Assembly (NCBI GenBank): GCA_020891255.1
Contig: BQFW01000007.1
Location: forward strand, 248,001 to 312,000
Length of the DNA stretch: 64,000 bases
Direction of reading: 5' to 3'
Source: Entomortierella parvispora E1425
Lineage: Eukaryota; Fungi; Mortierellomycota
Each line of letters starts with the position of its first letter. The stretch's first letter is position 1. Shown piece after piece: positions 43,624-46,541 of this stretch. The notes below the pieces were generated by a model that searched no databases, had not been told where the DNA came from, and saw only the letters and a program-made list of their open reading frames with translations. The position numbers were made by a program, and so were the translations under genes.

Positions 43624-44940
<1,317 letters not shown>

Positions 44941-45060
44941 ATGACCAACATCTAGCGGATGTCCGATTCTTTTGTTTACTGACCATTTTTTTTTATCTTT
45001 TTTTTTTCCTTTCTGTCCCATCATATTTTGTTTCTCTGTCGAGATGAAGAAAGAAGAACA

Positions 45061-45404
45061 ACACCAGGGGTCCTTGATCTTCCCATCTGTTACTCTCCCG
45101 CTCTGGCCATCTTTTTCCCACGATCTCAAAATTTCAACAAGAGGAATGACTCTTTTTGAAAATTTGTTTTCGACTAATGGGGGCTCATAAAAGGATGGTC
45201 GGAGTTGTGATGATGCGTCTGAAGATCTCGGTGAGAAATACCCTTTGAACCTGATGGTCAGATGAAAATAAGGAAGTACAAGAACTGAACGAGCATGTAA
45301 AAGGCCCTCTCTTTCTCTGGAGAGTGGTTTTTTGTCCCTCGAATAGTTTTTTTTCCTTACTTTCTCTGATCCAACACGATAATGCGTGCGGCTAGGAAGC
45401 GTGT
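45061..45404 (+). ncRNA. TPP riboswitch aptamer in the THI4 3' UTR with two large hairpin insertions
   Basis: P1/P2 5' ACACCAGGGGU (45061-71); P3 CCuuGAUCUUC/GAAGAUCucGG; core UGAGAAAUACCCUUUGAACCUGAU (45232-55); P5 CACG-AUAAUG-CGUG-CG (45375-90); P4'/P1' UAGGAAGCGUGU (45393-404). Confidence 0.85.
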
Positions 45405-45578
45405 ACATCTCTTTCTTCACTTCAGTCTCGACCCTCTTTTTTTTCTCTTTCATTTTATTTTCTTTTCCAATCTTCATTTTTTTCTTTCACTTTTCATTAC
45501 AAAATAAATCTCTTTCATCAAAGAGTAAAAAACATACTCCATCGTTCCCACATCTTGTAAAGAAGTATGATTGCTTCG

Positions 45579-46541
45579 TTAAAGCGTAGCCGTCATCTGA
45601 ACCGACCGCTTGGCAGTCTCTTCAAACTTGGTCTTGTCTGATTTCCAAAGTTTCTAGTATTATTGTCCCCAAAGAAGAAAAGAGATGAGCCGGCTGAGAT
45701 TTTGCGTTGGCAACGATCTGGCTACTGTTCTACTGCTGTGCGTTCTTGGTTACCTCTGCCTCTGGGTTGGCAATATACTCCTCGACGGGGTGGACAAACA
45801 TCCCCCGAACCGCCAACAGAACTTTTTCTATGCTCTGGGCTGGACTCCACCGTTCTGCACTAGAATCGTGGTGGGCCGGATCACTACCGGCGACAAACAG
45901 CAAAGGGAGTCCTACCGTTCCATCCTGGGCCACTGTGGGAGACAAGAGAGATCAGAACGCAATGGGTCAGTGTGTCCATCAAAAAAAAACGGGACATCCC
46001 TTGAGCTCCTTTCTTTTTTTTTCCTCAGTTACCGTTGGGATGAAAGATCTGTCCAGACAGCTTGACCTTGGGTGGCAAAAGTGGGTACTCTTTTGGGAAC
46101 GTCAAGGTGCCAGGAAGGATTGAACCTTCATAAGCGGTTCCCTTTGGGGCACTTTTTCATACAAGCGCGATCCGATCAAAAAAAAAAAAAAAAAAAAAAA
46201 AAGTACGCAAGCAAAGGTCAGCCCTAGCTGAGGTTCTCTCAACTTAATACCGCAATGAGTTTCCGGAATGGAGTTCGTTACTTGATGTGAATGTTCCATT
46301 CAAACACATTGTCTTTGCTGATGGGCTCTAGAGTTTGATTGGACACGTGGAGAAGAAAGAGCTGACGGTGTGAGAGATTGAGTGCTGTATTTGGTCTATC
46401 AATGCCGGGTTCGGGGCCATCCTTCTTTTTCTTGTTACCAGCTACTATGCCATTGTGATGATACAAGTTGAGTTCGGCCAGCTCTGCCTTGATGCGCTTG
46501 GAGGCCTTTGACTCTCTGTTTTCGTCAAGATGAGGATCCAT
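45579..46541 (-). CDS. UBC7-derived ubiquitin-conjugating enzyme variant lacking the catalytic Cys, 5 exons
   Basis: MDPHLDENRESKASKRIKAELAEL...GIVA/EPISKDNVFEWNIHI/NAPKGTAYEG...FPKEYPLLPPKVK...FHPN/VAQDGTVGLPLL...ERWSPAQSIEKVLL...ANPEA/KLWKSDKTKF...ATL*. Intron positions match UBC7. Confidence 0.82.

Follow-up and report, generated by a model that had tools for sequence, protein, structure and literature searches.

The 64,000-nt stretch of the Entomortierella parvispora E1425 genome analysed here (contig BQFW01000007.1; hereafter the window, numbered from its first letter) carries, in the 3′ untranslated region (UTR) of the thiamine thiazole synthase gene THI4, an element at positions 45061–45404 that is probably a genuine, selectively maintained thiamine pyrophosphate (TPP) aptamer, a structural variant common to the whole family Mortierellaceae with predicted TPP feedback on the gene. 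The parts of this reading differ in strength. On comparative sequence grounds, we consider it very probable that the element is a selectively maintained TPP-type aptamer and likely, at a lower grade, that it has the predicted pair of properties of binding TPP and regulating THI4; any specific model of its output is tentative at best, and taken singly rather doubtful. The element adds a new structural variant to a riboswitch class already known, and its output mode is possibly new as well.

A preliminary description, made from the letters of the window, had proposed a plant-like TPP riboswitch on THI4, enlarged to about 345 nt by a long P3 helix and a further hairpin that separates J4/5 from P5. 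A string check placed every motif that it quoted at the position it gave, within 45061–45404, and the central claim of a TPP-type aptamer on THI4 stood: the core elements follow one another in order in the window and recur in 14 Mortierellaceae sequences.

Core conservation and a remodelled pyrophosphate arm

THI4 loci were compared from Mortierella alpina, Linnemannia elongata (two strains), Actinomortierella ambigua, Lobosporangium, Modicella, Gryganskiella, Benniella, Lunasporangiospora and Mortierella antarctica, together with three further Mortierella-type contigs (L087, L097 and L125) obtained by scanning metagenome contigs with the 25-mer GGTGAGAAATACCCTTYGAACCTGA. Counting the window, 14 Mortierellaceae sequences, representing 10 genera or more, carry the element 3′ of the THI4 stop codon and on the same strand, so that the association with a thiamine gene holds in E. 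parvispora and in all orthologues.

Both halves of the ligand-binding core are complete. The pyrimidine-sensing half (P2 GGGG/CCC, J3/2 UGAGA and a P3 that closes on UGAGA) is invariant in all 14 sequences and identical to that of bacterial aptamers. The pyrophosphate-sensing half is likewise invariant in each of its parts, namely GAACCU, the GA of J4/5, P5 with its L5 loop (G/A)UAAUG, the CG of J5/4 and the AGG of P4, with ACACG.UAAUGCGUGCG and AGG unchanged in 14/14. In the window, and in DNA letters, the strings concerned include AGGGGT at 45066–71, TGAGAAA at 45232–38 and ACCCTTT at 45240–46.

Identity to the window averaged 92–95% over the core blocks (P1–P2–P3 base; P3 base–J3/2–P2′–J2/4–P4–J4/5; P5–L5–J5/4–P4′–P1′). 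Between genera the core was 82–100% identical, the upstream UTR 52–66%, and the distal part of P3 and the inserted hairpin between J4/5 and P5—hereafter Pins—33–61% (42–61% for distal P3 alone), a neutral-like drift. Within four close pairs of sequences, the core was 95.5–100% identical against 50–76% for the adjoining UTR, while the two Linnemannia strains were near-identical throughout. Retention of the core while flanks and arms drift points to purifying selection that acts specifically on the ligand-binding nucleotides.

The minimum free energy (MFE) fold of positions 45055–45410 (356 nt) reaches −119.8 kcal/mol (z −5.67; none of 100 shuffles as good) and contains P1, P2, a continuous long P3, the insert hairpin and P5. 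P2 comprises the pairs A45066–U45244, G67–C43, G68–C42, G69–C41 (last two digits given) and U45071–A45238, with G45070 bulged, and is unchanged in 14/14 sequences apart from a single G–C to G–U change. P3 and Pins also fold well when taken alone, with z-scores of −4.19 and −6.23, respectively (0/200 shuffles as good in either case), so that fold and shuffles agree with the preliminary description on how the aptamer is enlarged. Within P3, the 12-bp stem of the preliminary description joins GGCCATCTTTTT (45105–16) to AAAAGGATGGTC (45189–200), and the arms of Pins are GGTCAGATGAAAATAAGGAAG (45256–76) and TTTCCTTACTTTCTCTGATCC (45352–72).

Across the family, the domain spans 210–540 nt, with P3 ranging from 110 to 234 nt and Pins, which is present in 14/14 sequences, from 32 to 321 nt; free as their divergence is, both form hairpins in every case. 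At the base of P3 the pairs are kept with several compensatory changes, and the third pair of P1 shows a compensatory change from A–U to G–C among the orthologues. Pins folds well in 13 of the 14 sequences (z −2.0 to −8.1), the weak case being Actinomortierella, and its two arms are matched to each other: cognate arms pair at −20.2 kcal/mol against −9.8 kcal/mol for arms drawn from different sequences, a preference matched by 0/5000 permutations, as illustrated by Lobosporangium (AAUUGGAA/UUUCAAUU, against GGUCAGA/UCUGAUCC in the window).

The position of Pins becomes plain from spacing. The 25-mer used for the scan occurs also in 117 ordinary TPP aptamers on bacterial-type metagenome contigs, which read CCUGA-U-CUGGAUAAUGCCAG-CG.AGG. 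From CCUGA to AGG the distance is exactly 18 nt in all 91 unique bacterial aptamers and in the THI1 aptamer of the moss Sphagnum, and likewise 18 nt, as counted by eye, in the THI4 aptamer of the chytrid Polychytrium aggregatum. Among the Mortierellaceae it is 50–339 nt, and the P4–P5 arm is not continuous; the 139 nt of the window resolve into 18 plus 117 (Pins), 2 (an AA linker) and 2 (extra nucleotides in J5/4). This arithmetic bears out the preliminary description, which had J5/4 two nucleotides too long: CGGCU exceeds the canonical length by exactly that number. With Pins lying between J4/5 and P5, the pyrophosphate arm of the Mortierellaceae is a three-way junction, and no report of such an arm was found in the literature searched, to which the fungal TPP survey of Moldovan et al. 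(2018) did not belong. An nhmmer profile built from the 91 bacterial aptamers aligned with a double-deletion construct, lacking both inserts, in colinear order from P2 to J5/4 (profile positions 18–103, 36.3 bits); since the native sequence by itself reaches 32.0 bits, the shared 25-mer accounts for the greater part of this score.

The mature transcript and the closing helix

Evidence from RNA comes from a 1439-nt metatranscriptome contig (L097) of a relative of M. alpina. In this contig THI4 introns 2 and 3 have been removed, as judged from a single tblastn high-scoring segment pair over amino acids 76–308 and from blastn blocks that skip the M. alpina introns, and the sequence runs on through the stop codon and the entire element, both inserts included, and continues for over 300 nt past it. 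Four independent soil metatranscriptome runs supplied Logan contigs at least 99% identical to L097, one of them extending from spliced coding sequence (CDS) through to the 3′ strand of the closing helix described below. Because spliced contigs join CDS and stop codon to the whole element, it belongs to the 3′UTR, where the preliminary description had put it, and is not spliced out. In the four runs, the aptamer is covered by RNA to a depth equal to or greater than that of the CDS, and no joints or loose ends were seen over the element in the contigs. The idea that Pins might be an intron is thereby ruled out for the dominant isoform, in which it is retained without joints.

A likely poly(A) signal (AAUAAA or AUUAAA), overlooked in the preliminary description, lies 28–122 nt downstream of P1 in 13/13 sequences checked, and none was found within 160 nt upstream of the aptamer in the same 13. 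Taken with the RNA contigs, the position of the signal makes the element a distal part of the 3′UTR in the main transcript. Polyadenylation at a proximal site, ahead of the aptamer, was considered and is unsupported, given the lack of AAUAAA over those 160 nt and an aptamer depth no lower than that of the CDS.

P1 had been described as ACAC/GUGU, and these strands are present; they do not form an isolated 4-bp helix. When the flanks are included in the MFE fold, P1 is the inner end of a long flank-to-flank helix that the preliminary description had overlooked, P0, in which 45038–45064 (GUCGAGAUGAAGAAAGAAGAACAACAC) pairs with 45401–45443 (GUGU followed by ACAUCUCUUUCUUCACUUCAGUCUCGAC). Flank-to-flank pairs, 21–37 in number, appear in the MFE folds of all 14 sequences. 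Cognate P0 strands form duplexes of −24.8 kcal/mol with P1 included and −21.3 kcal/mol without it, against −16.8 and −14.3 kcal/mol for non-cognate strands, and in neither comparison did any of 5000 permutations do as well. The strands themselves differ from genus to genus, reading GAGGAGGGGGAAAAAAAA/UUUUUUUUUCCCUCCUC in Linnemannia and CAGACAAAGA/UCUUUGUCUG plus GAUGAC/GUCAUC in Lunasporangiospora. Pairing within P0 also accounts for a UCGAGA that is conserved upstream of the aptamer, since it pairs with UCUCGA on the other strand. Folds of truncated transcripts hinted at an anti-P0 helix, formed by the 5′ strand of P0 with the U-rich tract upstream of it, but this was rejected: spacer and P0 5′ strand pair more weakly with their cognate than across species (4997/5000), which suggests selection against misfolding.

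Switching at the level of secondary structure was sought in several forms. The preliminary description had offered the J4/5 insert as a possible switch element, on the grounds that its 5′ arm can pair alternatively with the CUGA of J4/5 and that its 3′ arm duplicates CUGAU. Comparison lent this suggestion no support: Lobosporangium and Actinomortierella have neither the duplicated CUGAU nor the alternative CUGA/UCAG pairing, and strand exchange between insert arms and flanks shows no cognate preference (p 0.73 for the P0 5′ strand with the Pins 3′ arm, p 0.47 for the Pins 5′ arm with the P0 3′ strand). RNAalifold returned a related small hairpin (UUGAACC/GGUCAG), a putative structure much less stable than Pins and likewise missing from Lobosporangium and Actinomortierella. 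Nor was conserved pairing found between the flanks and the aptamer 3′ half or J2/4–P4, of the sort used in plants and Neurospora; duplex z-scores were near 0 and the best sites fell at non-conserved positions. No GU donor between stop codon and aptamer is conserved across genera, and no plant-type 3′UTR intron with a 5′ splice site pairing to P4/P5 was found in the contigs, from which rare isoforms may escape.

The picture is of an insulated, constitutively closed domain. No riboswitch class other than TPP is, to our knowledge, established in eukaryotes, and the eukaryotic mechanisms known for it all involve splicing. Given that no conserved alternative pairing with flanks or splice sites was found, output would most likely come from ligand-induced docking of the arms. 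TPP, if bound, would dock the P2/P3 arm onto the P4/Pins/P5 arm, each of them lengthened by extended helices, a change at the tertiary level only and inside the closed domain, and so could exert negative feedback on THI4. Docking might be read out at the 3′ end of the mRNA, either through the processing that takes place at the poly(A) site close by or through decay, for instance by cleavage of the P0 and arm helices or by protection that they afford. Occlusion of splice sites, as in plants and Neurospora, would not be the route.

Gene context and related aptamers

The spliced THI4 translation contains the full Pfam Thi4 domain (E=1.5e-105) and is 100% identical to an Entomortierella parvispora protein. 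Its TAG stop codon occupies 44938–40, and the aptamer begins at the 121st base beyond it, with 120 nt between. Coordinates are collected in Table 1.

Table 1. THI4 and the parts of its 3′UTR element in the window
Feature	Position	Strand	Basis or remark
THI4 (thiamine thiazole synthase) CDS	43624–43848, 43959–44519, 44615–44662, 44848–44940	+	4 exons, 308 amino acids
3′UTR spacer, U-rich	44941–45037	+	sequence; poorly conserved
P0 5′ strand GUCGAGAUGAAGAAAGAAGAACA, purine-rich	45038–45060	+	pairs with 45405–45443
P1 5′ strand ACAC	45061–45064	+	MFE, string match
P2 5′ strand AGGGGU	45066–45071	+	layout according to the RF00059 consensus structure line
P3 hairpin, 160 nt	45072–45231	+	conserved base CC/GG and GAUCUUC/GAAGAUC; distal part variable
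Unpaired bulge CUCAUAAAA, P3 3′ strand	45184–45192	+	alignment columns 201–215; unpaired in MFE
J3/2 UGAGA, P2 3′ ACCCU, J2/4 UUGAA, P4 5′ CCU, J4/5 GAU	45232–45255	+	family-invariant
Pins, inserted 117-nt hairpin between J4/5 and P5	45256–45372	+	fold, orthologues, RNA contigs
AA linker, P5 CACG/CGUG, L5 AUAAUG, J5/4 CGGCU, P4 3′ AGG, AAGC	45373–45400	+	invariance, spacing
P1 3′ strand GUGU	45401–45404	+	MFE, string match
P0 3′ strand ACAUCUCUUUCUUCACUUCAGUCUCGAC	45405–45443	+	MFE, cognate pairing
AAUAAA, likely poly(A) signal	45503–45508	+	starts 99 nt past the end of P1

The unpaired bulge in the 3′ strand of P3 is conserved as (C/U)NCAUAAAAG and in most genera fits a GGG..CAUAAAAG motif, with A168 nearly invariant; although distal P3 is variable in other respects, the CAUAAAAG motif follows a run of GGG there and could be a site of tertiary contact or of protein binding. 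Elsewhere in P3, at 45122–45229, a match to a box C/D small nucleolar RNA (RF00529, 27.2 bits, gathering threshold 37) was judged to be due to chance, as the aligned 5′ end lacks a C box and distal P3 is unconserved. UGAUGA and CUGA stand only 5 nt apart within P3, at 45208–45222.

Downstream of THI4 lies a convergent UBC (UQ_con) gene on the − strand, whose apparent stop is near 45580, some 137 nt from the end of P0, and which has a TTTATT (AAUAAA on its own strand) near 45453–45458; the 3′UTRs of the two genes probably overlap. This neighbour is kept in most, though not all, Mortierellaceae genera. Many Mortierellaceae THI4 proteins in NCBI with a full Pfam Thi4 domain bear the name ‘triosephosphate isomerase’, which looks like a propagated misannotation. 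Two of the contigs examined call for comment. L131, a genomic contig from an ENA metagenome, has an Illumina adapter (AGATCGGAAGAGC...) at 1760–1792, directly past the THI4 stop codon, and is uninformative on the 3′UTR; the 480-residue open reading frame called in it is an artefact running through the 5′ region and introns. The Benniella-like contig L087 has at 4267–4318, far from THI4, a perfect palindromic hairpin that the mir-8186 model matches on both strands (46.9 bits, gathering threshold 80).

Beyond the Mortierellaceae, the best 120 protein matches to THI4 are almost all plant and green-algal THI1 (70–81% identity), with one chytrid protein (73%) and no THI4 from Dikarya or Mucorales among them; the E. 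parvispora gene is either slow-evolving or of unusual history. The lineages sampled from these matches, a moss and a chytrid, likewise carry 3′UTR aptamers.

Compared with canonical RF00059 aptamers, as represented by Escherichia coli thiM and the 117 metagenome aptamers, the Mortierellaceae element has the same order of parts (P1-P2-P3-J3/2-P2′-J2/4-P4-J4/5-P5-L5-J5/4-P4′-P1′) and shares the 25-nt centre, L5 GAUAAUGC, the CG of J5/4 and AGG; it differs in the addition of Pins, the linker, two nucleotides in J5/4 and the P0 clamp of 20–30 bp on P1. Plant aptamers, such as that in the 3′UTR of THIC, are said, after work by Wachter and by Bocobza in 2007, to act through 3′UTR splicing and alternative 3′ processing. 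Plant and moss aptamers are very similar to ours in the 5′ half (CACCAGGGGU.CUUG) and at the 3′ end (AGGGAGUGUG), and that of Sphagnum (L133:4086–4187) lies in the 3′UTR of the orthologous gene THI1, a placement known from non-seed land plants (PMC11521341). The plant 3′UTR aptamers are, however, compact (about 100 nt; 74 bits), whereas the Mortierellaceae show no splice signature, no joint and no complementarity to P4/P5.

Among fungi, riboswitches on THI4 and NMT1 have been recorded mainly in 5′UTR introns (PMC5882874; PMC5997356), where those of ascomycetes occlude alternative 5′ splice sites (PMC5997356; PMC5882874), and a survey with fungal-specific models makes no mention of Mortierella (PMC11683625). 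The THI4 and NMT1 elements of Neurospora crassa and other filamentous ascomycetes resemble ours as fungal TPP aptamers of one gene family whose P3 is long and variable; the Mortierellaceae aptamer differs from them in lying 3′ of the stop codon, in being retained in the mRNA and in possessing Pins and P0. Closer in placement is Polychytrium aggregatum (L132, about 4050–4254), a fungal THI4 aptamer some 120–230 nt past the stop codon, again with a long P3. It differs in having a canonical P5 arm and no Pins and is partly recognised by RF00059 (40.9 bits), below the gathering threshold because the model misaligns the 5′ half; the true P1–P2 (UUGCACUAGGGGUGCUC) lies about 125 nt upstream, across the long P3. 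The label ‘plant-like’ in the preliminary description therefore holds for 3′UTR placement as in Sphagnum THI1 and fails as a specific likeness to plants, the chytrid THI4 having the same placement. To date only Mortierellaceae are known to have Pins, P0 and the longer J5/4, and placement at the 3′ end is common to the chytrid, the Mortierellaceae and mosses.

Competing explanations and significance

Several observations weigh against a functional TPP aptamer. As the preliminary description had foreseen, a standard covariance search misses the element: RF00059 gave no match at its gathering threshold (54.3 bits) in the window, where a permissive search returned a misaligned hit of 15.1 bits (E=3.4). 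Eight orthologous loci yielded no hit at E≤1, against scores of 74.2 bits for Sphagnum and 40.9 bits for Polychytrium in comparable searches. The invariance of P2, P4 and P5 means that these helices lend no covariation support. Pins adjoins residues that, according to the thiM and THIC crystal structures, contact the pyrophosphate in canonical aptamers, and by this position it could weaken or change binding. The RNA evidence stems from a relative of M. alpina in soil metatranscriptomes rather than from E. parvispora, for which a search turned up no RNA run, and contigs hide rare isoforms. No expression platform of a known kind was identified, and a report on diatoms describes predicted 3′UTR TPP aptamers there as non-regulating (10.1101/2022.01.04.474978).

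The Rfam failure, taken alone, might suggest chance resemblance or a functionless lineage-specific repeat insertion; the comparative data refute both, since the element stands at the orthologous position in 14 sequences with strong folding z-scores, and neither Pins nor P3 has a second copy within the window that would mark it as a repeat or mobile element. A more serious contender is a relic, in which Pins and the longer J5/4 have broken the pyrophosphate arm and the remainder is kept as a structured 3′UTR module for stability or 3′-end formation. Such a relic would fit the want of a switch or platform, a constitutive P0 clamp that makes P1 insensitive to ligand, the position of the element within an apparently dominant transcript and the diatom precedent. 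We nevertheless consider it unlikely: none of the 14 sequences departs from UGAGA, GAACCUGA, GAUAAUGC and CG..AGG, although neighbouring helices drift to 33–60% identity, and a purely structural module would not require ligand-contact nucleotides. The preliminary description had named decay of the core in orthologues as the mark of a relic, and what is seen is an invariant core, cognate-specific P0 and Pins arms and compensatory changes in P1 and P3.

An aptamer of altered specificity, whose three-way-junction arm reads thiamine, thiamine monophosphate, hydroxymethylpyrimidine pyrophosphate or a thiazole intermediate instead of TPP, would explain why all the family-specific changes (Pins, the two nucleotides in J5/4 and the A-ended linker) fall in the phosphate-sensing arm and leave the pyrimidine half unchanged. 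We rate this as improbable, because the GA of J4/5 and the CG of J5/4, which contact the pyrophosphate in canonical aptamers, are invariant, and P5 and L5 are unchanged. Marginally less probable again is a platform of plant type, in which TPP controls splicing of a 3′UTR intron or use of a cryptic 3′ splice site immediately ahead of the aptamer and so alters the length of the 3′UTR. A pyrimidine tract and CGAG/AU (the stroke marking the presumed junction) do precede the aptamer, and 3′UTR placement is shared with moss THI1; yet the contigs of the four RNA runs show no joints or loose ends, UCGAGA is accounted for by its pairing with UCUCGA in P0, no GU donor is conserved, and the 3′ half of the aptamer lacks conserved complementarity to the flanks.

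The reading of the element as a maintained TPP aptamer with feedback on THI4 is therefore the one we prefer. Its boldest extension combines an undescribed architecture with an undescribed output: a permanently clamped three-way-junction domain beside the poly(A) site, in which docking alters 3′-end processing or decay, and a 3′UTR placement that is ancestral for THI4/THI1. We regard this combination as possible and, as a whole, rather unlikely. If true, it would add a new mechanism for a eukaryotic riboswitch, one that dispenses with secondary-structure switching and with splicing.

For the fungi, the element shows that a riboswitch survey relying on RF00059 returns too low a count in early-diverging lineages. 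It also offers a natural test of how far the TPP-binding fold can be remodelled, and of whether a helix in the pyrophosphate arm is tolerated or required. As M. alpina is transformable, the Mortierellaceae provide a tractable system in which to study riboswitch output without splicing in a eukaryote; together with the chytrid and moss aptamers, their element bears on whether control of THI4/THI1 from the 3′UTR is ancestral in eukaryotes.

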